Source: Anthoceros angustus (taxonomy: Eukaryota > Plantae > Anthocerotophyta). From it: DNA of 26,599 nucleotides. Below the pieces are notes generated by a model. That model was given only the letters and a program-made list of their open reading frames with translations, ran no database searches and was not told where the DNA came from. Positions 2,419 to 23,220 of this stretch are shown here, piece after piece (the first letter of the stretch is position 1; each line of letters starts with the position of its first letter). The position numbers and the translations under genes were made by a program. The DNA lies in assembly GCA_010909165.1 (NCBI GenBank), contig VJWM01000377.1, positions 1 to 26,599 on the forward strand, given 5' to 3'.

Positions 2419-2556
2419 CTCTCGTCTACTTTGTTCTATGATGTTCCAATCATTACTACTTTATACACAGAGTAATCTCGGGTGATATTGCATGAGGGTT
2501 TCAACACGTGGCTCCCAATCTCAAAAATATTGGGACAATAGCATGAGCACTATATA

Positions 2557-3662
2557 TTATGGCACATACAAGTCCATTGTCCCGTTGATGGGAAGTCCAC
2601 AAGTGGGGCACGTACTGCTGCGGTCTCTATGCTTCTGCGTGCACTTGTTGCAAAGTAGGAGATGATTGCAAGGTAAGATAATGGTATTCACGGCTCAAAG
2701 CGATTATTGCGATTATATATGGTTCTAACTCTCCGAGCATTGCCTTGAGGTCCTCAAGTAGTGTCTCCTGTCGGACTCAAGTGAGTCTAAGGTCTCTCTC
2801 GGTTAGCGTTTTCCTCCTCTAGCTGGGGTGTGGTAGTGACCATATCCCTTGCTTCCTCTCCTCCTTCAAACTTTGCCGAAATGATATCCTCAATAAAACA
2901 TAATGTTTTTCAGAACTCTCAAGGGCATCTAGAGGGCCCCTCTCTCCACCCTTCCCGGATCCTAGCAAGGAAAGCCAAATCTCTTGCCGCTCTCTCGATT
3001 TCCTTACCTCCATCTGCACTGCAGGTATCTTCTCTCTCCTCCTCTTCACACCTTTGCTCTTCTTCTCCTCTTCCGTAGGCTCCGCTTTGGGCCTTTTGGA
3101 TTCACCAATTTTGTGGCCCCTGCATGTTGGGTCTTCTAGATTTACCAATTGCATAAGCATAAGCACAAGTTTATGACATTGTCTCACTCATTCGAGTGCT
3201 AGTCCATTTTGCAAAAGGAAGGCGAACACGGAGGTTGAATAATCTTTTCAAGCTCTATCTGCTCACGCTCTGCCGTTGATTACACGAATTCTATCCTTAG
3301 CTTCCATTTTCCTTAATTTAGCTTTCTCTTTGGCTTTCTTTTGGAAAGCGGAGATCCCCATGCCCCAAATAGTTTCTTTTTGCTCTTGAGCTTGAAATTG
3401 TTTTTGCTCCTCAAGGCTTTCCAACTCTTGATCGGACATGAGCTTAAGGGATGCGCACCACCGACTTGTCTCACGCTCTTGAGTTCGGTGTGGATAAGAT
3501 GAAGCTTGTCCATTGCTTGCTTTATTGGCCAACTCGTCCGACCCACCCAAGACCATCAGCCTATCTGACTCCCATTCCGGTAACTTTTGAGCTCGAACAT
3601 CTCCGCAGTGTGAAGCACAACAACTTCAAGTTCGCCAAGCTCACCTCCACTTCATCCGCCAT
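2557..3662 (-). pseudogene. RING-family copy 1: coiled-coil + C-terminal C3HC4 RING gene, frameshifted in this sequence
   Basis: Manual minus-strand translation. ATG at 3662 (MADEVEVSLANLKLL) follows the family leader. Second motif ASLKLMSDQELESLEEQ is in ORF 3263-3556. C-terminus reads NTIILPCNHLLLCNKCTQKHRDRSSTCPTCGLPINGTMDLYVP* (stop 2557-2559). The first CxxC of the RING is degenerate. Confidence 0.82.
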
Positions 3663-4678
3663 TCCTCGGCGGCAATGTCAATGTAGAGTATCCTCGGCAG
3701 CTGCATGCAAGTCGACATGCAATACATTAACAAATTTAATGTATTAGAATTAAAATATGATGGAATCTGAATTTAAATATGACGTTGACCACGTGCGATT
3801 AAAGCAAGTATCCTCGCTTGGAAGATTGAATGATTATGTTCCAATTTCTCCAAATGCTTCCTTGATGTGTGCCGATCCTCCGTGAAATGTGTTTGTATAA
3901 CGATACTTGTATTGATTTAGTTTTTCCTTAATTGGATAAAAATAAGAGGGAAGACAAAACAAGGATGCATTAATTGATGTCGGAACCCTCCATATATAGT
4001 ATGAGGCTTTGATAAGTTCTCGATAATCATTAACCCATTAACCTATAACATGAAGTCGGGGGCGGTGACTTGGAATATTATAAATTGATATGAAGATTTT
4101 ATCTTTCAAAATTGAATCTATTAAAATTATATATTATGAGTGGTTGGTAACTAGTTCTACATTTTTGTTCCAACATACGTAAATTGTTTCATTTTAGTCC
4201 CATGATATCGGTCATTTGTCCTTGTATAATTAGTGGATTAACTATAATACATTTCTTCTTCTTTTGAGTTGCATTTATTTTTCTTCTTCTTTTGGACTCC
4301 AAGCTTTGAAGTCTAACAAAGCAATGAGACCTCCAATCAGATGATGGTCACCTGTGGTGACCTCGGTAGGTATATAGAGGTACATAGATATAGAGGGTGA
4401 GTGTGTGACCCTCAAGCGTCGTGAGAGAACGAAGGAGGTGAAGTGAGAATAAATCAAATATTTAATATAAAAATAATATATCTAGTAATCTTTCAAACTA
4501 GGTAGGAACCTTTCTCTACCTACCTCTATCTACTCGGGTCAATACCCCACGGTGAGGAAATGAGGTGTTAATTCTTGATGTTTGTCTTTATAAAACAAGT
4601 AATCTCGCCTCAAGGCCACCTTTATAAAATAAGTAATCTCACTCCGAGGCACACATGAGTGAGGACGGTGCCCCAAGA

Positions 4679-5360
4679 TGTTAGAAATGATTAGTACAAC
4701 ATGATATCAAAAGAGGTCATGAAGAGTGCCTGGGATGTGGGTATGGATCTTGGTTCTAACCTCCTCCAGGCTCTCGCTCAAACTAGCTGTTCAGCCACCT
4801 ACAAAACTAAGCAGGGTTAGGCCTTTCTTCTTCTTGTAAGGCTGATGTGCCACTCAACCTCTCACATCCACTCATGCATGCAAACAAACACCACTAAAAA
4901 TCACTGATACAAGCTACGAAGCTGCTATTTGTGACAAGGAAAGACAGGCTGATGCCTAGCTGCTTGTCCTCCAGCAAGGAAACTTGCTTGTTCAAAACTG
5001 TGGTGGGTTCGCTCCGGTCACCCAGAGCTAGCCCCAGTGGCCACACTTATCCCACGGTCGTGGAATACGTGGGTTCGATCCCGAGAGACTTGTCTGGATA
5101 CGGTGATTCGGAGGGGTCGATTCTCACGCTCTCTCTCTCAACTGCTTCTCTATTACCAATTGCCTCACCGAATATGGGCTTTGGGTTTACTGGCCCACGG
5201 ACCCAAGTTGAGCCTTCCAGATTCCTCTAGCTTCTAAGATCAAACACCATAGCCTGTTCTAACAAGTCTTTGCATGCTACTGAGACTAAGCCCATACCCT
5301 AAGACGCATGCCTTCCATTAAATTATTCTCCACTTACAGGACTTCTCATGATCTAAAACA
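4679..5360. mobile_element. LTR-like segment (TG...CA, ~680 bp)
   Basis: Begins tgttagaaat and ends atctaaaaca (imperfect terminal inverted repeat). Its first ~52 bp resemble the LTR-like start at 6380, which follows a PPT. No target-site duplication is visible. Confidence 0.4.
5029..5085 (+). other. tRNA-derived-like fragment with Pol III A/B-box-like motifs
   Basis: tagccccagtgg (A-box-like, 5029-5040), ccacg-gt-cgtgg stem (5052-5063), ggg-ttcgat-ccc T-arm/B-box (5071-5082). The anticodon loop is too short and there is no acceptor stem, so it is not a functional tRNA. Confidence 0.3.
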
Positions 5361-5374
5361 TGGGGACAACAGAT

Positions 5375-5575
5375 GAGAGGAGGCCTCATCATCTAGATCA
5401 CTCTCTAAGGTCATGAGACATTGGATCAAAGAGGATGCCTTATGATCTAGATCATTCTCTAAACTCATCGGACCATTAATTAAAGCATGATGCCTTATGG
5501 TCTAGATTATTCTCTAAACTCATCATACAACATATAAAAATCAGTCTCTAAACTCATCCGACCATTAATAAAACC
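5375..5575. repeat. Degenerate array of 'gccttatgatctagatcattctctaaactcatc'-like units
   Basis: Three to four degenerate copies, including the perfect palindrome atgatctagatcat at 5442-5455. Confidence 0.75.
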
Positions 5576-5642
5576 TCAAAATTAATTCTTATTATTTTAT
5601 TTAAAAGTCCTTTGAATCCTTGCGGCTACTAGGCATGTCGAT
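5530..5642. repeat. Direct repeat, copy 2; partner at 1-113
   Basis: Near-identical to 1-113. Confidence 0.92.
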
Positions 5643-5857
5643 TCGGGTTCTTGGTAATTTCATGTCTCGGTTCTCTCAACCACCGATATACTTAATTAAT
5701 GTATGTATATACCTATATAAGCTTTTAATCGTGTGAAGCGATCGCAATAAGTAGTGGACTATAATATATAGCGATTGTAATATGTAACCATCGCAGCGTC
5801 ACATTTTTTAAAGAGAATGCGTGATACTTTTGGGCTCTGCATCGCTGCTGCAAAGGA

Positions 5858-6340
5858 ATAGTAGGTGAAGGGGAGGTGAATCTGCCTGCGAACTTGAAGC
5901 TGCTGTCTGACGAGGAGTTGGAGGAGAACACTCTATGGGTATGGAAACATAAGTACATTGTGGAGATTAAAGGCACTGGGTGACGATGAGCTAAAGGAGC
6001 ATCGAGTATGAGGAGGGAGGTCGAGGCAGGAAAAAATTTTGTCGCGTTGGAGAGGAGGTGGCGAGCAGCAATTTAGCGGTCTTGGCTACACAGAGAGGGA
6101 GAGGAGGAACCATATTGAAGAAGGAGCAGGACACGAACAAGCTTCAACTAATTTACAAGGAGCGCTCGGGCGTGCAGTGAGGGATTTCCGCCCATCAGGC
6201 TGCTCCAACGAGTTCTTGGTGGAGAGGCTCGAGGAGCGAAACAACTTCTCGGCATTGGAGACAACAAATGGCTGGAAGGCTTTTGCCCAAGAACTAGGCT
6301 GAGGCCAAGCGTCAAGCGATGCGCAAGGAGCGTAGGGATA
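5858..6340 (+). pseudogene. RING-family copy 2: 5' half only, start codon lost
   Basis: Family leader gggctctgcatcgctgctgcaaagga is followed by ATA instead of ATG, reading (I)VGEGEVNLPANLKLLSDEELEE. A later match reads SNEFLVERLEE. Homology ends near 6340, before a PPT/LTR-like sequence, with no RING. Confidence 0.78.
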
Positions 6341-6368
6341 CTAGACCTAAGGGAATAATTTTGATATG

Positions 6369-6460
6369 TTGAGTGGGAGTGTTAGAAATAATTTGGTACC
6401 ACATATCAAAATAGGTTATGAAGAGTGCCCTAAAAATAGGTTATGAAGAGTGCGCTAAAA
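6369..6460 (+). mobile_element. Copia-type polypurine tract followed by an LTR-like start (fragment)
   Basis: ttgagtgggag is immediately followed by tgttagaaat (6380), the usual copia PPT/LTR junction pattern. It is similar to 4679-4730 and contains the tandem aaaataggttatgaagagtgc x2. The other end was not identified. Confidence 0.45.
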
Positions 6461-6711
6461 TTACAAATATGTATACCTTCTAGAAACTCATGTATCTTCT
6501 AGAAAGCCCAAGAGATGGTAAAGCCAAGTGATGGATTCAAGCACATGAAAAATCAACAGACCAATAGAATTCAAGGCTGAGTACTATGTAATGCCAAGCC
6601 CACCTAGGTGTAGGTGTGGTGTGTAAGTGTGCTTGTGTGTTAGTACCCATTCAGTAGTCGTCACCTTTCTGCTGAATCTAACGGTTCGAGTGGCTCATGT
6701 GACTCGGAGAC

Positions 6712-7390
6712 GCGCTCGCGTTCGTTTGCCTTCCAGCGTAAGGGCAGGTCCGGTGGTTAAACAGCCTGCCCAAGGAGGTTGTGTTGATGGGCAGCTCGTT
6801 TCTTTGGATATTCAGATGGGCCATGGTGCGTCACCTTCCAATCCGAGCTCTCCGGACAAGCCAGAGCCTGGCGTGTGCAGGATCGTGAATGGGCGTCATG
6901 GCTCGATGGAGAATGTGGGAGCTTGAGGGATGCTCGCAGGGGTTTGATGGAGTTGCCAGGAGAGGTTGTTTCATCGATGACAGTGATGTAGTCGTTACTG
7001 TGCGATTTACTAGGGCGGCCGATTCATTTCAGGTACCGGTGAGATCTCAATGCTGTCTGTACAAGATAATCATGTCACAGTGGGGTTGTCTACGCAGTTG
7101 CTTGTACGCAGCAGGCCTGCAACTACTGAATGGTAACGATATTTCTTTCCTGTTCAGCGTTTTGCCCTGGTCTGTTGTGAACTGAGTTAGTGATGGGTTT
7201 ACTGCTTCATTTGTTTCGGGAATCATTCGATTTTCGAGGAGGAAGTGTTGCCAGTTGCTGGCAGCACCACGTTTTAATGTTATTGGTAACTATCTGGTCG
7301 ACACGTATGTCCCGAGAAATTCACAAAGTCTCTAATGTGGCCTTCAGCTGAATTGTTTCCCTGGACTCTTGCTCACATGTATGCAACATT
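6712..7390 (+). repeat. Block A, left arm of large inverted duplication; partner 17825-18505
   Basis: ORF-track peptides match on opposite strands (6889+ MGVMARWRMWELEGCSQGFDG vs 18326- MGVMALWRMWELEGCSQGFDG), and the nucleotides align throughout. Confidence 0.93.
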
Positions 7391-7645
7391 TAGCTCGCCA
7401 ACATCCTGCCCATCGGGAGTAACTGAGGTCGTGGACGGGCAGGACATCAAAGTAACATGTGTGCAAAAGGGAAGGAGGGTCAGCGTCGAAGCTGCTTGCG
7501 TGCTCCGATTCAAATGTGTCTGCTGGTAACACTTTTGTTGTTGCTTGTTTGTTGGTATTGACATGTATACTAGATGTGGAAGCGGGTTGATGCGCACAGC
7601 CGAACACCCTGTCTCAGCACTGGAGGCGCTCTTAGCAGTTTCTGC
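7385..7645 (+). repeat. Block B; direct-orientation copy at ~17097-17366
   Basis: gaggtcgtgga(c/t)gggcaggacatcaaagtaac...cactggaggcgctcttagcagtttct is present at both sites. Confidence 0.92.
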
Positions 7646-7789
7646 TAAATCACGATGTTGTTTTGTATGTGTGTTTTATTCTCGTTTGATCTGTTCGATT
7701 TCACGGACCGGACGCGAGGAAAGAACAACACACGGGCATCCCGCTCCTTGTCTGTACGAGACATGCTGATTTTTAGGAGTGAGCCGTGT

Positions 7790-7961
7790 AATTTATCAAA
7801 TGCTGGGCCACCCTGCTCCCACATTCAGCATGCATGTAAGCATCAGGCTGGCAAAGAGTTCAGGGTTAAGGCCACCACCTTTGAGAATTTCTTCAGGGTA
7901 AAGGCCACAATGGAGAATTTCTCAAACCCCTTCTGCATGATACGGATGGCAGCTGATTACT
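7790..7961 (+). repeat. Block C; inverted copy at ~17390-17568
   Basis: The KEFRVKAT(T)FENFFRVK peptide appears in ORF 7655+ and ORF 17577-. It contains an internal ~30-bp tandem repeat (7859-7921). Confidence 0.9.
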
Positions 7962-8986
7962 TCCTGAAACTAACGCGTGAAAATGCCACGGTGCTACCAA
8001 CATGCAAACAAAGGCCATTTGCATCTCACCCGGATAGATAACCGTAGCGTTGCCATAAAAGTGACGGTGGGTGGGGAGAGGTCCACGGGTTGTCGGTCGG
8101 AAGGTTGATGGGATGTCGTCATGTTATGTTATCCCTCCACTGCCGAGGGAGGGTGTCGCTGCTCGGTTGCCCGCCTCACGCAGTCCCCCACTCTAACGCG
8201 GACCTCATCCCACCCTGTCACCCAACTCGACTTGGAGGTTGTCACCCAACTCCGACTTGGATCGGACACATCACGGACACAACTTCAACGCAGCCGGACG
8301 AGCAGATCGCCAGTCCACAGATCCCACTAGCCCCGCGTCTTGGTCAGGGCGCTCACCCCTTCCAGCTGCTGCCGAAGGTGAGAAAAAATTTGTTATACCC
8401 TGCCTTTACTTTTGGAAAAACACTATGGTTATATCTGCAAAATCATTGCACTTCCCTTCCCCACGCCGACTTTCGTGAGCATGTTGTTCCCTTTCACAGG
8501 CAGCCGGACCTGATGTCATGAAAGATCATGTTATCGAAATGGTACCAATTTCCTTCCTGAGAAGCCATGGACGGTCCCGACTTCGCCATTATATCCGTGT
8601 GGTGGAACTGTTGTGAATTCCACCACAAGCTTGGTGGAATTCACAACAGTGAGTACGGCAAGAGGTGAAGCATGGTGAGTGCCAGCAATCACAAAACCTA
8701 CCTTTCCCGAATCTCAGCAAGAACTGACATTATCAGCGAGGCACAAGAGTGGCAACTTTACTGGCTTTGCACATTCTAGTCAAGCTCGTAGCTAGAAACA
8801 AGTATTCAAGTCCACAGACACGTCTGGACAGAAGGCCAATGTCGCAAACTGTCTACCTTTGTTCATAGCTACCTTGATCAACAGCTTTCGTACTAAAAAC
8901 CAGTATGTACCAAGACTAGCTGGAGCAACAGCAGCTATAGAGGACAAGGTGAAATTTTCTTTTCTTTTAATTTCTCCCCGTTTGTT
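7872..8986 (+). repeat. ~1.1-kb direct segmental duplication, copy 1; partner 12254-13381
   Basis: Colinear from ccaccacctttgagaatttc to tttcttttaatttctccccgtttgtt. The right end is the family 3' cassette in minus-gene orientation. Confidence 0.95.
8608..8649. repeat. Perfect 18-bp inverted repeat (hairpin), 6-nt loop
   Basis: ctgttgtgaattccacca-caagct-tggtggaattcacaacag. The second copy (17-bp stem) is at 12992-13031. Confidence 0.92.
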
Positions 8987-9717
8987 TTGGTTTTGATCGA
9001 GGCAAAGAGAAAAATTGATGACTTGAGGAGGATGGACCAACTTCGGGCCGTCACTTGAGTTCACCGAGTTTGGAAAGTGGATGAGCAATTTTCAATATCC
9101 ACCACTTTTCAAGACTTTAAAGATAAGTATTCGCACTTTGGGAGCATAGTCTAAAGAGCAAGCAGCCCATCTTGAATGAAGATGGGTCCAACCCAACATT
9201 CGAAAAGATGCATAAATCCAAGCAAGTAAGCTGCGATAACTTCTCTTTTCACTATTATTTTCATTACATATAATTCAATGTATTCTAATTCTATGCATTG
9301 AATGCGTAGATAGGGGCAGAATTGAAAATAAGGAGTTGAAAACGAGACTTGTTGTCTCTCATGGAAGAACCGAGACAACTAAAAACATTCAAAAGGTACA
9401 TCGCTTGAAAGGTATATATTGCATTCCAAAAAAATTCTAATGTTTATGTTTCTTCGTAACATACGATCACATTTCAGTAGTGTGGGGAATCTTCACACGT
9501 GTTTAACGCTTGTCGAAAAGGTATATGCAAAGAAAGATCTTCTCCGAATTGAAATGGAGGTAAATGACTAATTACTTTTACTTTTTGTTTGTAGTTATCG
9601 GAGAATCAAAACGAGTTGTTTTCACTCTTTGAGGTGAGTACTAAAGTTAAAAATAGATAAGTTTATATATGAATTCGAATGGTTTAAATTGCGTAAATAT
9701 TCTCGCATGAAATATTC

Positions 9718-10180
9718 AAATGATAATACATTTATCCGGACCATACAATCAGCAGCTCAAAAGTACTATTCAAGAGACGGACACTGTAACCATATTACAC
9801 TCCATCTACTCCAATAGAATATGTGTGATTGAACCAAAAATATTTTGATTAGAGACGACAAAGGATTTATGATAATCCTTTTATTGTGTAAAAGGATTGA
9901 AAAACTAAAAATGATACAGAGTGAAGGAAGTTACCGTAAGAGAGAGAGAAATGATAATACATTTATCTGGACCATACAATCAAGCTCAAAAGTACTATTC
10001 GAAGAGGCGGACGACGGAACCATATTACACTCCATCTACTCCAATAGAATATGTGTGATTAACCAAAAATTTTGATTAGAGCCTAATTACGACGGTGATG
10101 ATAATCCTTTTATTGTGTAAAAGGATTGAAAAAACGAAAATAATCTGGTAGTTGAAATTCTTGTAAGAGAGAAATGACAT
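9718..10180. repeat. AT-rich tandem repeat, ~231-bp unit x2
   Basis: aaatgataatacatttatc.ggaccatacaatc starts at 9718 and 9949. Each unit carries a 10-bp-stem hairpin aatcctttta-ttgtg-taaaaggatt (9874-9898, 10103-10127). Confidence 0.92.
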
Positions 10181-10449
10181 ATAAGCGGGTGGTATAGGCA
10201 CCGGTCTAAACAAGATCACGGACCTCGGCTCCGCCTCGATGCCGCGTCGAGTTAGGCGCGTCGGCCCCGGACTCGGCGCTCCCTCGCCGAGGCGGGCGCG
10301 TCGGGCGCACGGCCTAAACGGTCTCGGCCTCACGGCCTCGACCGTTCTCGGCCGTGGCGCCCAGCGTCCGTTCCTCTTCGTCGAGTCATAGGTTTACGCG
10401 GCCATGGTTTGCTCACGCTCGCAGCCAGGCTCTTGCGGCGCACCCTCAC

Positions 10450-11600
10450 TAAGCGATTAACTTTCCGAGTGTAGCTCGCACCCGGTTTCTTGTCCATTGC
10501 TCGGTCTCCTAGGCCCTTGGGTTTGAGTTCGGGATGGGCTTGCGAAGCGGCTTCCGTATGTCGGTTTTACCACATGCCCCGCACGCCTCTTTCTCCTTTG
10601 ACCCACCAACACGATGCTCACATTCACGCCTTGCGGCCCCTTGCACCGCAAACACTTTACGGATGTCTTGAAGCTTACTGAGCCACTTGATCCTTTGATG
10701 GCGGCTCTGCGTTGGCGTTCACCGCACATGCTCGCGATAATGTGACTTCCGTGCTTCTAAATGTTGGTGCTGGTGTGACCTCCGATCACATTGTGCTCCT
10801 CATTGGTGGTGACATCTCCCTTCATAACTCTTTCGGCCATCTCGTACGCTGCTCCAACTCATAATCGCCCCATGTAGCATATGCGAAAGTTGGCGATCAC
10901 CCTCCTCTGTCTTCTGGCGCGAATGTATATTTGCGCTGCCTCCCTCATGGTCTTCACCTTGGTGTCTTTCACCCGCCTCAACCGTAGATATGCGGATCTT
11001 AGAGGCTCATGCTTGATCACAAACTTTGACAACTCTTGGATTTTCTCAATGGAAGATCAGGAACATCTCACCAAACTTGACGAACATCTCGTCCACCAAA
11101 TAAGTGATGACCTCGGATTGCGAACCCGATGATCCGGTTCTTCATCATCGACCTTGGAGCCTTTCCTTGCCGCTTCATTCGCAGCGACATGTGTGCATCC
11201 TGCGATCTTTTCTTTGCGATCCGATAGTAGCGTTAAAGCTTCACCGGCTAGAAACGTGCTCATCTTCCGAGTGCCATCTCGGTGTGAACTCGGACTTGTA
11301 TTTGAGCACCATCTCATCAATCGCCCATCGAACTTCTCTTCAAAGTCGCAAGAGACATACTACCGTGTCTGGTGAACACATCATTTTTCTGGTGGTTCAT
11401 AATCCATCCTGGCGCCACCACGATTTTCTTCAAAGTCAATGGATCGATGTGACTCCACTCAAATCGACCACTTGTCCTACGGACGAAGGAAGGCATGCCC
11501 GGGATTGTGCCCGGTGTGCTTTCGTCGTCCACCCGACTGTAACAACACCATCACTATCAATCCCTCCCCGCGAGACTATGTAAGGCATTCCGTCAAAGTT
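10450..11600 (-). mobile_element. Degenerate retroelement gag-like region with two zinc-knuckle-like motifs
   Basis: Minus strand gives KCLRCKGP.. (10639-10660) and EACGACGKTD.. (10556-10590, His/Cys recovered only with frameshifts). These are preceded by the gag-like fragments FLAGEAL and TKVKTMREAAQI. Heavily disrupted, and the boundaries are approximate. Confidence 0.42.
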
Positions 11601-12253
11601 GGTGTCGATTCCTTCCAGCGTCGATCCGCCAACCATGCCGACTTGTCAATCACCTCACCCGAGACGTTGAAAATACCGCTGCCCACTCCACCGAGATCGG
11701 CCCACTCGAATGGATACGCATAAAGGAATAATCCAAGGTGTTTTCTCGGCTTTACCATGGACTTATCTGGTCGCTCACCGGCTTGGGGTCACGATTGACT
11801 TCCTCTTCTCCGTCTTCGCTCGAATCTCGGCCCTCTCTGGACCCTTCGAGTCGCGTTACCTTGTGTGGCTTCACCGATGCGGATTGTTGATGTGCAAAAA
11901 TCTCGACTTGGGATGGTTGTCCTCTGCACACCACTGAAGCATCACAAGGTTTCGTAAAATGCTTGGGATAGGCATTCTATCGAGACATCAACAATCCGCC
12001 CTCAATGACGGATTGGGCTTTGTAGCCTACACGCCGATCTTAATTCGGCCCGAATTCGAGCGCCGTGATCACACCCGCACATGTCGGAGATCTTCGCCAC
12101 GAGCCGTAATGCGCTTGACCATTCGCTTGTATGGTCCACATAACCACGACACCATCCTATTTCCATACCCATGCCACTCATCATGCCACCACACACATAG
12201 CACACGCACACCATCAAATTTCTTATCTACCTCTTTCTATGCTGCCATGACGC

Positions 12254-13381
12254 CCACCACCTTTGAGAATTTCTTGGGTAAAAGCCACAATGGAGAATTT
12301 CTCAAACCCCTTCTGCATGATACGGATGGCAGTTGATTACTTCTTGAAACTAGCGCGTGAAAATGCCACGGGTGCTACCAACATGCAAACAAAGGCCATT
12401 TGCATCTCACCCAGATAACCGTACCACGGTTGCCATAAAAGTGATAGTGGGTGGGCGAGAGGTCCACGGGTTGTCGGTCGGAAGGTTGATCGGGATGTCG
12501 TCATGCTATGTTATCCCTCCACTGCCGAGAGGGAGGGTAGTTGCTGCTCGGTTACCTGCCTCACATGCGCAGTCCCCCACTCTAATAAGCGCAGAGCTCA
12601 TCCCTCGAAGAGGTCTGTCACCCAACTCCCAACTTGGATCGGACACGTCACGACACAACAAGATCAACCCGAGCCGGCAGACCGCCCAAGTCCACTAGCC
12701 CCGCTTGGTCATAGAAGGGCGCTCACCCTTCCAGCTGCTGCCGAAGGTGAGAAAAATTTGTTATACCCTGCCTTTACTTTTGGAAAAACACTATGGGTTA
12801 TATCTGCAAAATCATTGCACTTCCTTCCCCACGCGCCGACTTTCGTGAGCGTGTTGTTCCCTCACAGGCAGCCGGACCCTGATGAGCTTAGGTTCATGAA
12901 AGATCATGTTATCGAAATGGGTACCAATTTCCTTCTCGCTGAGAAGCCATGGATGGGTCCCGACTTCGCCATTATATCCGTGTGGTGGAATTGTTGTGAA
13001 TTCCACCACAAGCTTGGTGGAATTCACAACAGAGTGAGTACGGCAAGAGGTGAAGCATGGTGAGTGCCAGCAATCACAAAACCTACCTTTCTCGAATCTC
13101 AGCAAGAACTGACATTATCAGCAGGCACAAGAGTGCAACTTTACTGGCTTTGCACATTCTAGTCAAGCTCGTAGCTAGAAACAAGTATTCAAGTCCACAG
13201 ACACGTCTGGACAGAAGGCCAATGTCAGCAAACCTGTCTACCTTTGTTCATAGCTACCTTGATCAACCAGCTTTCCTCTGTACTAAAAACCAGTATGTAC
13301 CAAGACTAGCTGGAAGGAGCAACAGGCAGCTATAGAGGACAAGGTGAAATTTTCTTTTCTTTTAATTTCTCCCCGTTTGTT
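12254..13381 (+). repeat. ~1.1-kb direct segmental duplication, copy 2
   Basis: Matches 7872-8986. Here it continues directly into the 3' end of RING-family copy 3. Confidence 0.95.
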
Positions 13382-14373
13382 GCATGCTCCCTCGCGTGTC
13401 CACTCTTGTCGCTTGCCTCTTCTTTTCCTGGCCCAAATTGGAAATTGGAACAGCAGCAGCACTATTAGCGCACAGAGACGAGACCATTGTTCCGGTGATC
13501 GGGACTCTGCAAACAGGGCAATCACCCATCTGCTGCGTGCAGGAGTTGCAATACAGGAAATGACGGCAAGGTAAGATGACGGTGTCCCTGGCCTGCTCCC
13601 AGCAGATCGTGCACATAATCTTCTCCTGCTCTTCCTCCAGGTACTCACGCATCTCGTTCCTGTCCGACTCAAGGAAGGCGACAGCTGCCCGCAACCAAGA
13701 GTTCTCCTCCAGCAGCCTCCACAGTTTGGTACAGACAGCCAAATCCTTGTCGCCCTCACCGCATCCCAGGCCTCCTTCTCCTCCTCCAATCTCTGCAGCT
13801 CGGCAGCGAAACCCGCATCCGGATCCGTTGCCTCCATGTCCTCCGTCATCCTCCGCCGCTTGGGCTGCTCTCTCTCTTCCTCCTCCACTTCCGTGGGTCC
13901 CGCCCGCGTTCCAGAGCCTTCTGGACGCTCAATCCTTCACGCTCTCTAATAAGCTCATGCTCCCTGCGCTCGGTGCGGATGACTCGGAGATTGGTCTGCT
14001 GTTGGTTCTTGGTCAGTGTGTACAACGCTTTGTGTTTGTTTGCACCCGCTTTGGGTTCGTTTCTGACACAGCTTGTCACTTCTTCCTCCGCAAAGCAGAA
14101 GTTCTGTCTTCGCGTCAAGCAGAACTTCTTCCTCCTCCAGGCTTTCCAGCAGCTCCTCGTAGGACAAGAGCTCAAGGGACGCAGCCAGGTTCCTCCGCCT
14201 GTCGTCACGCTTTGTCCGTTCGTTGCGGATCAGTTGCAGCCTGTGCGTGGCCTGTTGAGAATTCGTCTCACAGTGCCGCACAACTTTTATTGCTCCTCGA
14301 ACTCCTCCTCCAGCTCGTCGTCGCTCAGCAGCATCAGATCGTCAGCCAGGTTACCCTCCTTCTCACCCGCCAT
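13362..14373 (-). CDS. RING-family copy 3: coiled-coil + C3HC4 RING, putative E3 ubiquitin ligase (frame-broken in this sequence)
   Basis: ATG 14373: MAGEKEGNLADDLMLLSDDELEEEFEEQ, then an in-frame TAA. Repeat NLAASLELLSYEELLESLEEEE follows. The RING is intact: CTICWEQARDTVILPCRHFLYCNSCTQQMGDCPVCRVPITG (ORF 13362-13742). Paralogs suggest the true stop may be ~13465. Confidence 0.82.
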
Positions 14374-14692
14374 TCCTTGGCAGCCACGATGCAAAGCCCA
14401 GTATCCTCACCTTTCACGCTAGTATAAACCAAGCCATGCCGTGAGCTGGTTTGTATGGCATACTCCGTTCCGTTGGATATTTTATATTCGATATTCGATC
14501 ATCAAGGCCAGCCGCCAGCGTGGGACGATGCCTCGGTACCCTGCCCTTGCTTTAGGGTATAGCAACGCTTGCTCTTATTATAAATACGCTCCCATGTGTG
14601 TCTCAAAGTCATTCTCATCCAACCAAGTTCTCTTCCACCTCTGCATGCAAGGGAGCGTGAACGCACTTGGGTCTGCAAGCTGGTAGCGAAGA
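14374..14692. promoter_or_regulatory. Putative bidirectional promoter between copies 3 and 4
   Basis: 319 bp between divergent ATGs. TATAAAA on the minus strand (14480-14486) and TATAAATA on the plus strand (14579-14586) start 113 and 114 bp upstream of their ATGs. Confidence 0.55.
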
Positions 14693-15848
14693 ATGGCGGG
14701 ACGTGTGGAAGTGTCCAGGCCAGCTATGGCGGCTGAGGCATGCGCAGAGGCCGAGCTAGCTATGAACAAGCTGCAGGCTAGGCTACCCAAGGTAGTTGAG
14801 AAGGCTGAGGGCGGCTAGGCTGGCTGAGGAGAGGTAGGCGCGCTGAGTACCAGGCTTGGCTGGCTGATGAGGAGGCTAGACAGGCTGAGGAGGTGGCTAG
14901 GTTGGCTGAGGATCCGGAGGAGAACACGCAGGCTAAGGAGGAGGCTATGCTGGCTGCGGACCTGAGGCGGTGTCCGACAAGGAGCTGGAGGAGAGGCTCC
15001 AGGAGCAGGAAGGCTTTTGTGGTGTGCGTCCGCGATATTGAAGTTGTCGGCATTGGTCAGGCAAACCAGAAACGATTCGGTAGCCGTGCTCGCGAATGCC
15101 GCATGGAGGAAGAAGCAGGCCATCAGCAAGATCGACGTGATCCAAAACGAGCGCAGAGCGGGAGCGCAGTCGGGAGCAGAGCTGAGGCTCCAGGTTTAGA
15201 GATCCTTATGCAAAACCGACTCCGACTTCGGAGGAGAGACAAATTGCCATTAACATGTGCTTGTCTTGTGCAGAATTGGGGAATCTAGACGATGGGCCAG
15301 GGTCCAGGGTGCGTGCCTGTATGCAGGCGGCGTCGCATGTGGCGGGGAAGCGCTCGAGGACAGGCAATGCAGTGACTGGGTAAAAGGGATGTCGCTGAAG
15401 ATGGAGGGGTTTGCTGTACGCGCGTCCGCCGGCATGAGCTTGCCACAGATTTTGGAGGAGGAGAAGGAGAAGGTGAGGAAGAAGAGAGGGAGGCAAGGGA
15501 TGCCGCTGTACATGTCCCTGCCCAGCTGCGGAGGCTGGAGGAGGAGAACGCCGAGCTGCGAAAGGGTATAGCCTTTGCACGAAGGGATGCGCTGACCTGT
15601 AGGAATACGCATCGGAATCAGATTGCGGAACTTGAGTCCGAGAGGACACACTGCGTGAGGACCTGGAGGCAGAGCAGGAGAAGAGTATGTGCAAGGTCTG
15701 CTATGTGGAGCCCAGGAACAGCGTCGTCTTACCTTGCTTTCATTTCCTGTTGTGCAAGTCGTGCATGAAGCGGGCCCGGGACCGTACCATTCCTTGCCCT
15801 ACTTGCAGAGTCCGCATCACCGGATCAATGGCAGTGTTCGTGTCATAG
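14693..15848 (+). CDS. RING-family copy 4: coiled-coil + C3HC4 RING, putative E3 ubiquitin ligase (frame-broken in this sequence)
   Basis: ATG 14693 follows a diverged leader. Motif MLAADLR..SDKELEERLQEQ is present. The RING, read manually from 15681, is intact: KSMCKVCYVEPRNSVVLPCFHFLLCKSCMKRARDRTIPCPTCRVRITGSMAVFVS* (stop 15846-15848). Confidence 0.85.
14800..14955 (+). repeat. Degenerate coding minisatellite (EEARLAE-like) in copy 4
   Basis: Repeated ggctgaggag/ggctaggctggctgag units giving AWLADEEARQAEEVARLAED...AKEEAMLA. Confidence 0.7.
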
Positions 15849-16044
15849 TAGTAGTGCCACCGGATCCTAATCTATGTGTTAGGGCAACTTGTGCTGTCCC
15901 AATTCTCCCAGTCTGAGTCTGGGACTGGCTGTGTTGCAACTTGCGAAAACTCTGCCAGCGACAAATCTGCACAAGCAAGTGAAGAGCTAAGCAGCGAGGA
16001 GAAGAATTCTTGTCCTGTATAGGCTTGCTGCTTCTCCCTGGCTT

Positions 16045-16320
16045 TATCTAGGAGCTGATTGATAAGGTAGCTATGAACAAAGGCAATCAGTTTGCTGACA
16101 TTCCAATAATTGTACCGGTGCGACCTAGAAGCAGAGCAGAAGAAAAGTCTGTGCTTGGTCTGCCTCGTGGAGGCCAGGAACACCATCTTCCTTGCCATAT
16201 CTAGGAGCTGGTTGATAAGGTAGTATGAACAAAGGCAATCAGGTTTGGGTTTGCTGACATTCCAATAATTGTACCGGTGCGACCTAGTGCTTGGTCTGCC
16301 TCGTGGAGGCAAGGAACACC
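16045..16320 (+). repeat. ~155-bp tandem duplication joining 3' cassette sequence to RING fragments
   Basis: tatctaggagctg.ttgataaggtag...tgtaccggtgcgacctag occurs twice, each followed by a RING start (DLEAEQKKSLCLVCLVEARNT; tgcttggtctgcctcgtggaggc). Confidence 0.85.
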
Positions 16321-16457
16321 TTCTTCTTTGGGAATCTCTTAAAAGGATTCTTGGTTAGAGCCAGGAATAAAAGATACCTTGCAACTGTGTGGAATACTCA
16401 GGGTGTCTGAGCGTCAATCTCGATTCGAACCCACTACGTTGTATTCTAGGTCAGAAT

Positions 16458-16830
16458 GCGTGAAAGGTGAGCATACTGGGCTCTGCATCGCGGCTGCCAA
16501 GGAATGGCGGGTGAGAAGGAGGTAACCTGGCTGAGGACCTGATGCTGCTGAGCGGCGGTCCTGCGAGGAGCAGTCTGGGCCAGGGAAAGAAGAGGCAAGC
16601 GACAAGAGTAGACATTTAAGGGACCATGCAACAAACGGGGAGAAATTAAAAGAAAAGAAAAATTCACCTTGTCCTCTATAGCTGCCTGCAGCTCCAGCTA
16701 GTCTTGGTACAGACTGGTTTTCCTCTTCCTTCCAGCTAGTCTTGGTACAGACTGGTATTTACGGGAAAGCTGGTTGATCAAGGTAGCTATGAACAAAGGT
16801 AGACAAGTTTGCTGACATTGGCCTATCGTC
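16458..16830 (+). pseudogene. Internally deleted mini-copy of copy 3 (leader + ~20 codons fused to 3' cassette)
   Basis: gcgtgaaaggtgag.atactgggct.tgcatcg.ggctgccaaggaATGgcgggtgagaaggag (ATG 16504) matches 14420-14330 reversed, then jumps to the reverse complement of ~13435-13215. Confidence 0.85.
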
Positions 16831-17096
16831 CACGATTAATTCTTTCCAGAATTTGGGAACCCGAGAGGTCGCTTACAGACGCAGAGCCTGTTTACCCTGA
16901 TCTTGAAACTGTAGCGTGCAATATTGCAGCCCAAGTGACAATATCGCGCTGCACCATTTCTTGCTTCTGACGCAAAATGAAGTCGAAGTGGACCATTCCA
17001 GCATCGAAGCTTTAGGGTCTGTTGCCCACCACTCAATGGAAGAGACGGTCGTCGACAAGATACGTGTCCAGATGATGGCATTTGTGCATTAAGCTG

Positions 17097-18505
17097 CCAA
17101 CATTTAGCCCTGCGAACATCCTGCCTATCAGGAGTAATCAGAGGTCGTGGATGGGCAGGACATCAAAGTAACCTGTCTGGAAAAGGGAAAGAGGGTCAAC
17201 GTCGAAGCTGCTTGTGAGTACTTCGATTCAAATGTGTCTGTTGGTAACACTTTTTGTTGCTTGTTTGTTGGTATTGACATGTATACTAAATGTGGAAGCT
17301 GGTTAGATGCCCATTACGAGCTGAACACCCTGTCTCACCGCACTGGAGGCGCTCTTAGCAGTTTCTATCCATGAAGTCTTTTGTCCAGCAAGTAATCAGC
17401 TGGCATCGGTATCATGCAGAAGGGGTTTGGGAAATTCTCCATTGTGATCTTTACCCTGAAGAAATTCTCAAAGGTGGCCTTAACCCTGAACTCTTTGCCA
17501 GGCCTGATGCTTACATGCATGCTGAATGTGGCAGCAGGGTGGACTCGAGCAGCATGTATTTGATAAATGACCCACATACTCTTGCAGGCTCAAGAGTGAA
17601 TGAACCACCTGCATACTTTCCTCAGTGTTCTAAGAATGGACTTGTGCAAATAGTGCGGTAGGATAGGATGAGATATGTATCAGGGTGTTCGCTCGATATG
17701 ACGATGCTTTTGAAAGCCCGTCATATTCTAGGACATACTAGCTGTACCATATGCGGATTGTTTCTCACGCTGAGGTCAGTTTTCAAATACATGGTGTGCG
17801 TCCACCATGCTGCCACAATCAGCATACATGTAAGCAAGAGCCCAGGGAAACAATTCAGGCTGAAGGCCACATTAAAGACTCTATTTGTGAATTTCGCGGG
17901 ACATTCGTGTCGACCAGATAGTTACCAATCACATTAGAACGTGGTGCTGCCAGCAACTGGCAACACTTCCTCCTCGAAAATCGAATGATTCCCGAAAGAA
18001 ATGAAGCAGTAAACCCATCACTAACTCTGTTCACAAAACACCAGGGCAAAACGCTGCACAGGAAAGAAATATCCTCACCATTCAGCAGTCCAATATTGCA
18101 GGCCTACTCTGTACGAGCAACTGCGTGGACAACCCCACTGTGACATGATTATCTTGTACAGACAGCATTGAGATCTCACCGGTACCTGACATGAATCAGC
18201 CCTAGACAAACGCACAGTAACGACTACATCACTGTCATCGATGAAACAACCTCTCCTGGCAACACCATCAAACCCCTGCGAGCATCCCTCAAGCTCCCAC
18301 ATTCTCCATAGAGCCATGACGCCCATTCACGATCCTGCACACGCCCAAGCTCTGGCTTGTCCGGAGAGCTCGAATTGGAAGGCGACGCACCATGGCCCAT
18401 CTGAATATCCAAAGAAACCAGCTGCCCATCAACACAACATGCCTGGGGCAAGCGGTTTAACCACCGAACCTACCCTTACGCAGGAAGGCCAAACGAACGC
18501 GAGTG
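17097..18505. repeat. Right arm of large inverted duplication (block B direct, C inverted, A inverted)
   Basis: See blocks A, B and C at 6712-7961. Confidence 0.9.
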
Positions 18506-19096
18506 CCATATCCGAGGTATGTGAGTGTACCATTTTATCAAAGGTATGGTGAGCAGGGCACCAGCCGCGCCCGCGCAAACCAACAAAGGGCTGGCATGGC
18601 ACAAGCCTGCAGACTGCGCACTCCGGACTCAAAACCAATCCAAAAGTCTCTCCTCGGTTCACCGCTGTGAAGAGAACTCAGACTTGTCAAGTAAACGAAC
18701 AGGCTGAAGGGCTCGGACGGCCACCCATTGGACAAAGCAACAACTGACATTAGCTAGATGCGTTGCAATAGCAGCTGGCCAGTCTGCAAGCACAAGAGTA
18801 TCAACTTGGCTACTGGCTTTGCACATTGCAAGCTCCTGAAAACAGCTGTCAAAGCCGGGAGACATGTATGCAAAGACTGTATCTTGTCGACAACAGACCA
18901 ATGTCATCAGCCTCTGCAAAGCATCACCTAACTTTGTGGATAACAGGACAATGTCAAAACCTGGCTACCTTTCGTCATGGGTAGGTACCCATGAAGCAAG
19001 GTAGCCAGCCTCTCATAAAAACCAGCATGTACCCTAGACCAGCTGGAGAGGAGGAGGCCTATACAGGACGAGGTGAAACACCTTTTTCCTCTTTGC

Positions 19097-19949
19097 TCAG
19101 CTCTCCTTGCTTAGGTCTTGTCCAGCTTGCCTCTTCCCTTGCTTGCTGGTCTTGTCGAATTTTTCTGTGATGCTGCCAACAGTAGCATGCTTTTCCTCCC
19201 TTTCCCGCAACAGCGCGGCCTGCTGTCTCATCCTCATGCTCTTCCTTTTGCACTATCTGTGCCATGGCCATGCTGCTCGCTTGGCTTCTAGTTTTTCCTC
19301 GCCGCATGCAACTCCGTGGCCCCTTCCTTGAAAATTCGCCAATTATGCACAATACAAGCACACGTTAATGGCGTTGTCAATTTCATTTTCCTCCCTTGAA
19401 TACGACTCCAGGGATTTGCACACGGAAGGAAGGTGGACGGTAGCTCTAAACCCCTGCAGACCAGTGAGCATCCGCCACCTCATTCCGGCATCTTTGGGAA
19501 GCCTCAATCTTCTCCTGGCCGCAATCACGCTCTCTGCGTTCGTTGCGGATGACTTGAATCTTGCCCTTCTTCTTCAATATGGCGTCCGGATGCAATGACC
19601 TTCCTACATCCGGTTTCTGTCTTCAGCTTTTTGTCCAGGGAAGTTGATGTACTCCGCTTCGCACAAACGTTTTTCTGTTTCTCAAGCCTCGTTACCAGCT
19701 CCTCGTCGGACAGGTCCTTCAGATACGCAGCAAGGTCCCATCGGCTGCGCTGACGCTCTTGCGGTCGTTGCGGATCATTTGAAGCTGCTTCTCCAACTTC
19801 ATATCCTTGACCCCTTCCTTCTCGACCCCTGTGCCGTGTCTAACAACCTTGCCACCAACGTAATTTTCCCCTCACTCGAGCCTTTCCTCAAGCATGTTAT
19901 CTGATTGCAGCTTCAGTTCCGCAGCAAGACTGCCCTCCTTATCCGCCAT
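19097..19949 (-). pseudogene. RING-family copy 5: N-terminal motifs and coiled coil, RING deleted
   Basis: Leader + ATG 19949 (MADKEGSLAAELKLQSDNMLE). Middle motif EIDNAINVCLYCA is present. After gaggaaaagcatgc it joins directly to the 3' cassette. Confidence 0.8.
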
Positions 19950-20007
19950 TCCTCGCCAGCCGTGATGCAGAGCCCAGTATCCTCAACCTACATGCAAGGC
20001 AGAGGCG

Positions 20008-20130
20008 TACAGACACCGTTGCATATGTATATGGCGGGTGTCTGTAATCACATGGGCAAGCACATGCGATTGCAGACACCCGCACATGTGATAAGGGCAA
20101 GATGTGACACATCCCCTTATCACATGTGAT
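20008..20130. repeat. Cluster of three overlapping inverted repeats, copy 1
   Basis: tacagacacc/ggtgtctgta (10 bp); gcgggtgtctgtaatcacatg/catgcgattgcagacacccgc (19 of 21); cacatgtgataaggg/cccttatcacatgtg (15 bp perfect). Confidence 0.88.
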
Positions 20131-20139
20131 TAGGGACAA

Positions 20140-20540
20140 ACCTTCCTTCTCACAGGCCTGCAGGAGGTTTAGAGCTACCTTCCTACCTTCCTTCTCAAAG
20201 GTCTGCAGGTTTAGAGATACCGTCCTACCTTCTACCTTCCTTGTGCAAAGCCCTCCTTCTTGAAAATCGGATGTGGAGGAGGGACAGTGAAATTGACAAT
20301 GCCACTAACGGGCGAATTCCCAAGGGAGGGGCCACGGAGTGCAGGAGGATGTCTCTCTGCACGAGGCTCTGCATGCAGGCGGAAAAACCAGAAGCCTGGC
20401 AAGCGAGCGGCGAGGTACAGGGGATGAAGTTGGAGGAGCTTGATGAGCTCGGCTCCTCCACCATGGCCATGGCGCAGATAGTGGAAAAGGAGAATGAGGA
20501 AGGGAGAGGAGGCCGCGCTACGGAGAGAGGAGGCAAGGCA
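20140..20540 (+). pseudogene. RING-family copy 6: middle fragment only
   Basis: SEIDNATN...SSTMAMAQIVEKE is homologous to copies 4 and 5. It is cut at the tandem-duplication junction before the RING. Confidence 0.75.
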
Positions 20541-21040
20541 CAAGCCTGCAGACTGCGCACCGGACTCAAAACCAATCCAAAAGTCTCTCCTCGGTTCACC
20601 GCTGTGTGAAGAGAACTCAGACTTGTCAAGTAAACGAACAGGCTGAAGGGCTCGGACGGCCACCCATTGGACAAAGCAACAACTGACATTAGCTAGATGC
20701 GTTGCAATAGCAGCTGGCTGGCCAGTCTGCAAGCACAAGTATCAACTTGGCTACTAGCTTTGCACATTGCAAGCTCCTGAAAACAGCTGTAAAGCCGGGA
20801 GACATGTATGCAAAGACTATATCTTGTCGACAACAGACCAATGTCATCAGCCTCTGCAAAGCATCACCTAACTTTGTGGATAACAGGACAATGTCAGAAA
20901 CCTGGCTACCTTTCGTCATGGGTATGAAGCAAGGTAGCCAGCGCTCCTCTCTCATAAAAACCAGCATGTACCCTAGACCAGCTGGAGAGGAAGAGCAGGC
21001 CTATACAGGACGAGGTGAAACACCTTTTTCCCCTCTTTGC

Positions 21041-21897
21041 TCAGCTCTCCTTGCTTAGGTCTTGTCCAGCTTGCCTCTTCCCTTGCTTGCTGGTCTTGTC
21101 GAATTTTTCTGTGATGCTGCCAACAGTAGCATGCTTTTCCTCCCTTTCCCGCAACAGCGCGGCCTGCTGTCTCATCCTCATGCTCTCCTTTGCACTATCT
21201 GTGCCATGGCCATGCTGCTCGCTTGCCAGGCTTCTAGTTTTTCCTCGCCGCATGCAACCTGTGGCCCCTTCCTTGAAATTCGCCAATTATGCACAATACA
21301 AGCACACGTTAATGGCGTTGTCAATTTCATTTTCCTCCCTTGAATACGACTAGGGATTTGCACACGGAAGGAAGGTGGACGGTAGCTCTAAACCCCTGCA
21401 GACCAGTGAGCATCCGCCACCTCATTCCGGCATCTTTGGAGGCCTCAATCTTCTCCTGCAATCACGCTCTCTGCGTTCGTTGCGGATGACTTGAATCTTG
21501 CCCTTGGCCTTATTCTTCTTCAATATGGCGTCCGGATGCAATGACCTTCCTACATCCGGTTTCTGTCTTCAGCTTTTTGTCCAGGGAAGTTGATGTACTC
21601 TCCGCTTCGCACAAACGTTTTTCTGTTTCTCAAGCCTCGTTACCAGCTCCTCGTCGGACAGGTCCTTCAGATACGCAGCAAGGTCCCATCGGCTGCGCTG
21701 ACGCTCTTGCGGTCGTTGCGGATCATTTGAAGCTGCTTCTCCAACTTCATATCCTTGACCCTTTCCTTCTCGACCCCTGTGCCGTGTCTAACAACCTTTG
21801 CCACCAACGTAATTTTCCCCTCACTCGAGCCCTCAAGCATGTTATCTGATTGCAGCTTCAGTTCCGCAGCAAGACTGCCCTCCTCCTTATCCGCCAT
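21041..21897 (-). pseudogene. RING-family copy 7 (duplicate of copy 5), RING deleted
   Basis: ORF 21667-21897 MADKEEGSLAAELKLQSDNMLE...KQLQMIRNDRK. ORF 21041-21286 reads through the deletion junction into the cassette. Confidence 0.8.
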
Positions 21898-21949
21898 TCC
21901 TCGCCAGCCGTGATGCAGAGCCCAGTATCCTCAACCCACATGCAAGGCG

Positions 21950-22075
21950 TACAGACACCCGTTGCATATATGTATGAAGTGGGGTGTCTGTAATCACATG
22001 GGCAAGCACATGCGATTGCAGACACCGCACATGTGATAAGGGCAAGATGTGACACATCCCCTTATCACATGTGAT
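21950..22075. repeat. Cluster of overlapping inverted repeats, copy 2
   Basis: Duplicate of 20008-20130. Confidence 0.85.
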
Positions 22076-22084
22076 TAGGGACAA

Positions 22085-22761
22085 ACCTTCCTTCTCACAG
22101 GTCTGCAGGAGGTTTAGAGCTACCTTCCTACCTTCCTTCTCAAAGGTCTGCAGGTTTAGAGATACCGTCCTACCTTCTACCTTCCTTGTGCAAAGCCCTC
22201 CCTTCTTGAAAATCGGATGTGGAGGAGGGACAGTGAAATTGACAATGCCACTAACGGGCGAATTCCCAAGGGAGGGGCCACGGAGTGCAGGGAGGATGTC
22301 TCTGCACGAGGCTCTGCATGCAGGAAAACCAGAAGCCTGGCAAGCGAGCGGCGAGGTACAGGGATGAAGTTGGAGGAGCTTGATGAGCTCGGCTCCTCCA
22401 CCATGGCCATGGCGCAGATAGTGGAAAAGGAGAATGAGGAAGGGAGAGGAGGCCGCGCTAATGCGGAGAGAGGAGGCAAGGCATGCAACAGTTGTTTCCG
22501 AGCTGCAAAGCATGGAGGCGAGAGAATATAGCCTCTGAACGAACGGCTGCACTTGACCTTAGGAATGAGCGTTAGCAAATTGCGTCCGACCTGGAGGCGG
22601 AGCAGGAGAAAATATGTGTAAGATCTGCTTTGTGGAGGCCAGGAACACCGTGGTCTTACCTTGCTTTCATTACTGTGCATGCAGCGGCACAGGGACCAGA
22701 CCCTACTTGCCCTACTTGCACAGACCCCATCACCGGATCAATGGCCTTGTATGTGGCATAG
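22085..22761 (+). pseudogene. RING-family copy 8: 5'-truncated, retains a partly damaged RING
   Basis: MCKICFVEARNTVVLPCFH (ORF 22614), then after a small deletion/frameshift PTCPTCTDPITGSMALYVA* (stop 22759-22761). No leader or N-terminal motif upstream. Confidence 0.8.
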
Positions 22762-23220
22762 TAGTGGTACTGCTGCTGTCCCAATTTTCTAACCTGGGAC
22801 CCGCTTTGTCTGCTGAACTCTGCCATCATCACAGAAAACTTAGACGAAACCAGCAAGGGAAGAGGTAAGGACAACACTAAGAAGCTGGCCAAGACTAAGC
22901 GAAGGGAGAGCTAAGCAACGAGGGACAAGAGATTTTTCACCTCGTCTTGTATAGGCATGCTCCTCCTCTCCAGCTAGTCTGGGTGCATACCGGTTTTTGT
23001 TAGAGAGGAGCGCTGGTTGAACAAGGTACCCACGAACAAAGCCGGTAGCCACATTTGCTTGTTATCCACACGATTAATTCTTTGCAGACATGTCTCTGGG
23101 CTTTGAATGAAGAGCTGTTTGTAGGAGCTTGCCTTGAATGTGCAAAGCCAGTTGCTAGTGTTGACACTCTCGCGTGCCTGCAGACTGGCCAGCCAGCTGC
23201 TTTTACAGCACATCTACCTG
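22762..23220 (+). repeat. Family 3' cassette (reference copy)
   Basis: ttcacctcgtc.tgtataggc...ctccagct.gtct.gg...aaggta...tgtgcaaagccag homologues occur at ~8740-8986, 13125-13460, 18760-19180 and 20690-21125 (minus) and at 15890-16105 and 16575-16850 (plus). Confidence 0.85.

Follow-up and report, generated by a model that had tools for sequence, protein, structure and literature searches.

The 26,599-nt contig VJWM01000377.1 of the hornwort Anthoceros angustus (its full length is called the window here) carries a family of RING-finger sequences that we read, with a probability of roughly 60%, as a local birth-and-death cluster of a lineage-specific plant gene encoding a coiled-coil protein with a C-terminal RING of the IAP/IDOL type. 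G+C makes up ~48% of this 26.6-kb stretch of eukaryotic DNA, which contains not a single N. A DNA map using the four best units as queries placed 11 family pieces in it. Ten of these had been listed in an initial annotation of the sequence as copies or fragments of one family, and three-frame reading together with the DNA map recovered family-related sequence at 10 of the 10 places; the eleventh piece, at 8675-8986(-), is an addition. When all listed places were read in three frames, the same blocks recurred: an N-terminal 'MAGE.E..LA..L.LLSD.ELEE', two 'I/V-I-R/Q-N-E-R-R' motifs, 'EIDNA.N', 'MAMAQIV.KE' and a helix followed by the RING. The initial annotation had spoken of an array of genes, with about ten copies or fragments. 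The related pieces are real, but few of them amount to genes: one is probably intact, another is of full length and has one real break or more, and the other nine are fragments. The pieces and the features adjoining them are as follows.

2526-3662 (-): copy 1, an old decayed full-length copy, N-terminus starting at 3662, 66-78% nucleotide identity to copies 3 and 4
5831-6340 (+): copy 2, a decayed 5' fragment from the N-terminal acidic 'LSDEELEE' block on, 76-77% identity over 5831-5927
8675-8986 (-): 3'-flank relic of a further copy, 95% identical to the copy 3 flank at 13060-13381, at the end of a 1.1-kb direct duplication
13118-13469 (-): 3' flank of copy 3, resembling an untranslated region, common to five other pieces at 72-95% (alignment A2)
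13470-14373 (-): copy 3, full length, helix present and RING complete (13509-13613)
14374-14692 (no strand): spacer of copies 3 and 4, 319 bp between divergent start codons
14693-15848 (+): copy 4, full length, with a complete RING (15690-15806)
16033-16330 (+): tandem debris, two ~150-bp units, each a 3'-flank piece plus the first half of a RING (C-x2-C and 11 residues)
16458-16832 (+): deletion derivative in which the 3' flank (80%) directly follows the 5' leader and ~24 initial codons (89% to copy 3)
18711-20000 (-): c19, RING-less, twin of c21 through a 1.94-kb tandem duplication
20115-20540 (+): c20, the first 424 nt of a c22-type 5'-truncated copy, 97% identical to 22060-22483, ending at the tandem-duplication boundary, no RING
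20650-21950 (-): c21, N-terminal and middle blocks plus 3' flank
22060-23260 (+): c22, 5'-truncated, with helix, broken RING and conserved 3' flank

Two complete RINGs were found by a six-frame scan, those of copies 3 and 4. Both follow the pattern C-x2-C-x11-C-x-H-x3-C-x2-C-x6/10-C-x2-C, with eight ligands in C3HC4 order, and both match the Pfam family zf-C3HC4_3 (PF13920), copy 3 with 53.9 bits (expectation value (E) 1.5e-14) and copy 4 with 50.3 bits (E 2.1e-13). Partial RINGs with an LPCxH core lie in copy 1 (core at 2662-2676(-)) and in c22 (22656-22670(+)), neither of which has all eight ligands. In copy 1, the RING survives in its second half, together with the C-terminal tail (2563-2688(-)); its first C-x2-C pair was lost through substitutions and stops and its linchpin Arg is changed to Gly. 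The RING of c22 (22608-22770(+)) has suffered a 13-nt deletion that removes the fifth ligand (alignment A1), and its linchpin Arg has become Thr; the fragment scores 26.5 bits against PF13920, just under the gathering threshold of 27 bits. The RING spacing and LPCxH core had been reported as intact in copies 3 and 4 and damaged in two further pieces, which holds for the intact pair and for copy 1; the second damaged RING, however, belongs to the tenth piece (22085-22761), as the eighth (20140-20540) ends before the RING.

For copy 3, the 90 residues that comprise helix and RING were modelled with AlphaFold2 from a 41-sequence alignment (A3). The model reached a predicted local distance difference test score of 97 and consists of a helix at residues 2-42 that is followed by the RING. 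Top Foldseek matches to this model were the RINGs of IDOL, cIAP2, cIAP1, XIAP and BIRC7, with root-mean-square deviations of 1.0-1.7 Å and a probability of 1.00. A sequence search of the PDB returned cIAP2, MGRN1, cIAP1, MYLIP and XIAP as best solved relatives (E 4e-9 to 5e-7). Sequence and fold thus bear out the class proposed earlier, a zf-C3HC4_3 RING of the IAP/MGRN1 kind. IAP and IDOL RINGs dimerise via the preceding helix and the C-terminal tail, and an aromatic residue in that tail helps to hold the donor ubiquitin. The family resembles these IAP/IDOL(MYLIP)/MGRN1-type C-terminal RINGs in ligand spacing, in fold, in the helix running into the RING and in the short C-terminal tail that ends the protein. 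Copies 3 and 4 retain the E2-contact Ile/Val between the first two cysteines (C-T-I-C in copy 3, C-K-V-C in copy 4) and the Arg after the last cysteine (CPVC-R and CPTC-R, respectively), the latter being nearly invariant in alignment A3. The tail is preserved in four copies, and in three of them position -3 is Phe or Tyr, the C-terminal ends reading 'FVS' in copy 4, 'YVA' in c22, 'YVP' in copy 1 and 'SVR' in copy 3. These conserved features point to a putative E3 ligase activity.

Beyond the RING, the likeness to these proteins ends. Unlike them, the family is a plant gene that lacks BIR, FERM or other partner domains, the identity is 29-34%, and the remainder of the protein is acidic and helix-rich. 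No BIR domain and no other Pfam match outside the RING was detected in any piece. Its N-terminal two-thirds matched no Pfam family and no Atlas cluster, and an ESM Atlas search with the middle block gave no usable match. An IAP homolog was rejected as an identity for the gene, since the BIR domain is missing and the likeness is confined to the RING.

An exhaustive HMMER search of 1.84 billion representative proteins gave 5314 matches, the best with an E of 4.6e-14 and with identities of 38-56%, covering the RING and a bit of the helix only. Among the matches are abalone IAP-like proteins, protist proteins and a small set of uncharacterised fern proteins of the same layout. When 151 fetched proteins were mapped back to the window, only the RINGs were matched. 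A word-index homology search with the 126-residue open reading frame (ORF) of copy 3 returned nothing in the range of 69-220 residues, and a metagenome scan with the helix and RING of copy 3 found no relative. Of the proteins whose encoding contig was looked up, P0037 belongs to an unrelated Logan contig. As judged from these sequence comparisons, the family is lineage-specific and unannotated, with no relative closer than generic RINGs among the 1.84 billion representatives.

The fern proteins are coiled-coil proteins with a C-terminal RING from Adiantum capillus-veneris (KAI5060654.1, here P0047, and paralogs) and A. nelumboides. They share with the family an acidic N-terminus, a coiled coil with an 'EEE.EK..C..C' junction, a C-terminal zf-C3HC4_3 domain, a length of ~270-400 residues and 40-49% identity over the last 65-100 residues. 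In contrast, no similarity could be detected beyond helix and RING, and their scores are no better than those of animal IAP RINGs, which leaves a shared origin of the entire gene unproven. With P0047 as query, only six fern or Logan proteins were returned. Plant BOI/BRG and SBP1-type ligases likewise carry a coiled coil and then a C-terminal zf-C3HC4_3 RING; the similarity is one of general layout and no more than a lead, and these ligases were not among the named matches examined. A literature search turned up no publication describing RING-gene amplification in hornworts.

As the window stands, the stop-free piece of copy 3 extends over 13362-13742. Short-read contigs of the same organism, taken from one DNA run in which 70% of the words of 13280-15900 are present, were compared with positions 13200-16900. 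They differ from the window by ~23 small indels in 3.7 kb, nearly all of them letters that the window lacks at homopolymers or short repeats. Of the 12 that were itemised, 10 are such absent letters, whereas at 13371 and 13474 the window has one too many, and all lie in or beside homopolymers or short repeats, which is the usual signature of long-read errors. A 595-nt contig over 14491-15080 shows 0 mismatches and 5 extra letters, and a 972-nt contig over 13406-14371 shows 4 mismatches and 10 gap letters. Many of the apparent frameshifts are therefore errors of the long-read assembly and do not belong to the DNA of the organism. The genes had been described as hidden from ORF calling; hidden they are, yet largely through assembly indels and not through biology. 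Every ORF of the window, the copia element described below included, likely looks more broken than it is, as the homopolymer deletions are probably window-wide.

Applying the itemised corrections to copy 3 connects the helix and RING to the upstream acidic block and places the stop 12 residues past the last cysteine. Copies 1, 4 and c22 stop there too, so that the stop position is conserved in four copies. Corrected copy 3 then consists of three open blocks in frames 0, 2 and 1, and each junction (in 14290-14341 and 13849-13936) needs one added letter. The contig over this copy has 972 letters against 966 in the window and 10 gap letters, of which 8 are itemised with a net gain of 4; this leaves exactly two further letters, both insertions. 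Two inserted letters are what the two junctions require, and the count therefore fits an intact ORF. From this arithmetic, in which the positions of the two insertions are unseen, copy 3 is likely to be an intact ORF of ~350 codons. The earlier description of the genes as intronless is plausible for copy 3, where a single-exon ORF can be drawn.

For copy 4, the itemised corrections make the first 117 codons continuous and fuse the helix in frame with the RING. Five further contig letters fall in 15211-15392, their positions unseen. A stop at ~15039 sits within the zero-mismatch contig, hence copy 4 has at least one real break. Against the short-read contigs, many of the frameshifts thus vanish as assembly indels, and the stop of copy 4 stays. 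The short-read contigs also contain a variant of copy 4 over 15645-15848, with 10 substitutions that cause 6 amino-acid changes and 4 silent ones and with ligands and stop kept. At several of these variant positions the letters of the window itself have zero contig support. Moreover, 41 of the 69 short-read contigs match the stretch at 90-99% only. Together with the variant, they suggest further copies elsewhere in the genome, or strain differences.

The two complete RINGs allow the constraint on the family to be estimated. A comparison of copies 3 and 4 across 61 helix and RING codons gave a nonsynonymous rate (dN) of 0.33 and a synonymous rate (dS) of 0.16, i.e., a dN/dS of 2.1 (bootstrap interval 0.96-6.8, 96% of resamples above 1), and other paralog pairs give 0.55-1.3; all of these values are small-sample estimates from 50-62 codons only. 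At ~20% nucleotide divergence in the RING region, 8 of 8 zinc ligands are kept. Neutral simulation retained all ligands without a stop in 0.6% of 20,000 trials (neutral expectation 0.6-1%). Since such retention has a probability below 1% under neutrality, the zinc scaffold has been under purifying selection in both lineages, which agrees with the earlier statement that the paralogs diverged strongly and still keep their ligands. The surface of the RING changed freely or adaptively while the zinc scaffold stayed constrained. CpG depletion and substitution spectra gave no clear signature of the repeat-induced point mutation or methylation type.

The arrangement of the pieces records how the cluster was built. 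Copies 3(-) and 4(+) are arranged head to head, 319 bp separating their start codons, and c21/c22 form a second head-to-head pair. Copy 4 shares 78.6% identity with c22 and 75% with copy 3, from which it follows that both members of the pair were duplicated together. A 1.94-kb tandem duplication (18593-20540 = 20532-22483, 95% identity) gave rise to c19 and c20, and only one pair in the window is more than 90% identical. The 3' flank of ~400 bp is kept among six pieces, with a conservation about equal to that of the coding sequence (alignment A2). The cluster turns over by duplication and deletion.

Apart from copies 3 and 4, the pieces are real wreckage, produced by internal deletions of 866 nt and 326 nt, the 13-nt deletion in the RING, truncations and the 1.94-kb tandem duplication. 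The longer deletion removed ~866 nt of coding sequence from the derivative at 16458-16832. The shorter one took the 326 nt holding helix and RING from c19 and c21, as seen where c21 positions 734-830 and 829-1013 match 22399-22494 and 22821-23016. Copy 2, old like copy 1, has lost its start codon and has no RING. A lineage-specific and rapidly turning-over array had been proposed for the locus; the protein libraries indeed lack any family member and duplication and deletion are evident, but what the array contains is mostly debris. A 42-bp tandem repeat (2.1 copies) is found at 20140-20232 and 22085-22177, exactly where the 5' parts of c20 and c22 stop, and may mark the truncation breakpoint. 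Within the spacer of copies 3 and 4 (14374-14692), each ATG is preceded by a TATA-like element at a distance of ~105-110 nt: TATAAATA (plus strand, 14580-14588) and TATAAAA (minus strand, ~14480-14487). These elements suggest a bidirectional promoter that the two copies might share.

Taken as a birth-and-death cluster, the locus would encode a protein of ~350 residues, with an acidic, helix-rich N-terminal two-thirds, a helix of ~40 residues leading directly into the C-terminal RING and an end ~12 residues past the last cysteine. By analogy with the solved relatives, this protein may pair through its helix and RING tail and work as an E3 ligase that engages a ubiquitin-loaded E2 of the UbcH5 type. 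The choice of target would then fall to the fast-changing N-terminal part. An ancestral head-to-head pair, represented by copies 3 and 4, would have been duplicated as a unit to give c21/c22. Later inverted and tandem segmental duplication and internal deletions would have left the nine dead fragments. Copy 3 has probably survived as an intact gene of a single exon, and copy 4 is of full length and carries its break or breaks.

Several observations weigh against a living gene, and some of them lend weight to the rival explanation that all copies in the window are dead pseudogenes. According to this explanation, which we regard as unlikely, the pieces are the relic of a once-functional RING family that drifts in silenced, repeat-rich DNA, and the retained ligands would testify to past function only. 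Nine of the 11 pieces are truncated or deleted, and the stop of copy 4 persists in a contig that matches exactly. The short-read run may stem from another strain, in which case some of the indels could be genuine differences. As to copy 3, its two remaining indels were obtained by count, and if they were one insertion of 2 nt, the frame would stay broken. The coding part and the 3' flank have similar identities (74-80% and 72-80%) and dN/dS ranges from 0.55 to 2.1, near or above 1, so that most of the sequence, ligands aside, looks near neutral. No RNA run carrying the stretch was found; a run that is only guessed to be RNA has one paralog-like contig of 1480 nt, touching 15518-15561 and 15793-15813. 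The protein libraries contain no family member. Drift, however, would have kept the eight ligands and an open RING at this divergence with a probability of less than 1%, the frame arithmetic of copy 3 fits an intact ORF, and the near-identical variant in the reads also retains all ligands and the stop.

A more ambitious reading would take copies 3 and 4, together with near-identical unseen relatives, as live, diversifying E3 ligases of a bryophyte-specific family, amplified under conflict in a non-recombining region of a sex or accessory chromosome. We consider this improbable. Its parallel would be ORF162, a male-specific gene family of Marchantia polymorpha that reportedly encodes a RING-finger protein. 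Amplification of the ORF162 family within V-chromosome repeats of Marchantia is on record (bioRxiv 10.1101/2021.02.08.430207). As with the family described here, a small protein-coding gene of a bryophyte has been multiplied along with repeats; unlike that family, ORF162 has hundreds of copies on a known sex chromosome, V(Y), as compared to ~11 pieces, and the two are likened by description and not by sequence.

The unit could also travel with a transposon, as cargo or accessory gene of a Pack-MULE, Helitron or Sola2-like element, and have spread by transposition; the initial annotation had raised such a caveat. Its defined conserved ends, a 5' leader of ~60 nt and the 3' flank of ~400 nt, both of which the internal-deletion derivatives retain, would be in line with this, as would surroundings rich in other repeats and a Ty1/copia element. 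However, no terminal inverted repeats flank the unit or the deletion derivative, where only chance-size matches were seen, and no transposase or other Pfam domain of this kind occurs in the 30 ORFs tested. The head-to-head spacing of 190-320 bp and the non-family DNA carried along in the 1.94-kb tandem and 1.1-kb direct duplications point to segmental spread instead, which makes transposition very improbable. A RING-H2 transposon accessory gene in particular was rejected, as ligand 5 is Cys and the pattern therefore C3HC4. Least credible is an E3 array amplified under conflict on a sex or accessory chromosome, the reading nearest to that of the initial annotation, which had thought of sex-linked, drive or defence loci: the dN/dS above 1 between complete RINGs with fixed ligands, the inverted and tandem amplification in repeat-rich DNA, the additional copies suggested by the 90-99% contigs and the ORF162 precedent speak for it, but the codons are few, the interval includes 1, the other pairs give 0.55-1.3, and most copies are debris instead of maintained amplicons.

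The window is also rich in other repeats. An Rfam scan of the window gave no matches, and Pfam on its 30 non-RING ORFs returned only a weak retroviral SH3-like match, which lies in the Ty1/copia retrotransposon. This element occupies ~23700-26599(-), is frameshifted and continues past the end of the window; integrase, the 'YVDD' motif of the reverse transcriptase and RNase H are recognisable across changing frames, and the nearest Atlas clusters of the RNase H piece are from Streptophyta. A repeat of ~0.9 kb occurs twice, with 6703-7643 corresponding to 17098-18516 and 7788-7966 to 17386-17571 (88-91% identity), in mixed inverted and direct order; its ORFs had zero Pfam matches. The 1.1-kb direct duplication (7872-8986 = 12254-13381, 89%) consists of repeat DNA without assigned identity plus the 3' flank of a RING copy, and each half contains a near-perfect palindrome of 41 nt (8608-8648 and 12992-13032). 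An AT-rich island at 9000-10150 (34% G+C) adjoins the truncated flank relic and holds a 229-bp tandem repeat (1.8 copies, 9718-10133). On both sides of the copy 1 region lies a 112-nt repeat (95%; 1-113 and 5532-5642), and a 54-bp tandem repeat (2.8 copies, 5376-5529) immediately precedes its second occurrence.

In the assembly of this genome, homopolymer deletions dense enough to hide real genes mean that frameshifted 'pseudogene arrays' need a short-read check before they are interpreted. The cluster itself is a new lineage-specific member of the plant RING E3 families that evolve by local duplication and decay, which is a well-known kind. A RING surface that outpaces silent sites over an unchanging zinc scaffold is a pattern usually tied to arms races. 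If copy 3 and its relatives are expressed, they would constitute an unannotated, lineage-restricted family of plant E3 ligases that is absent from protein libraries of billions of sequences.

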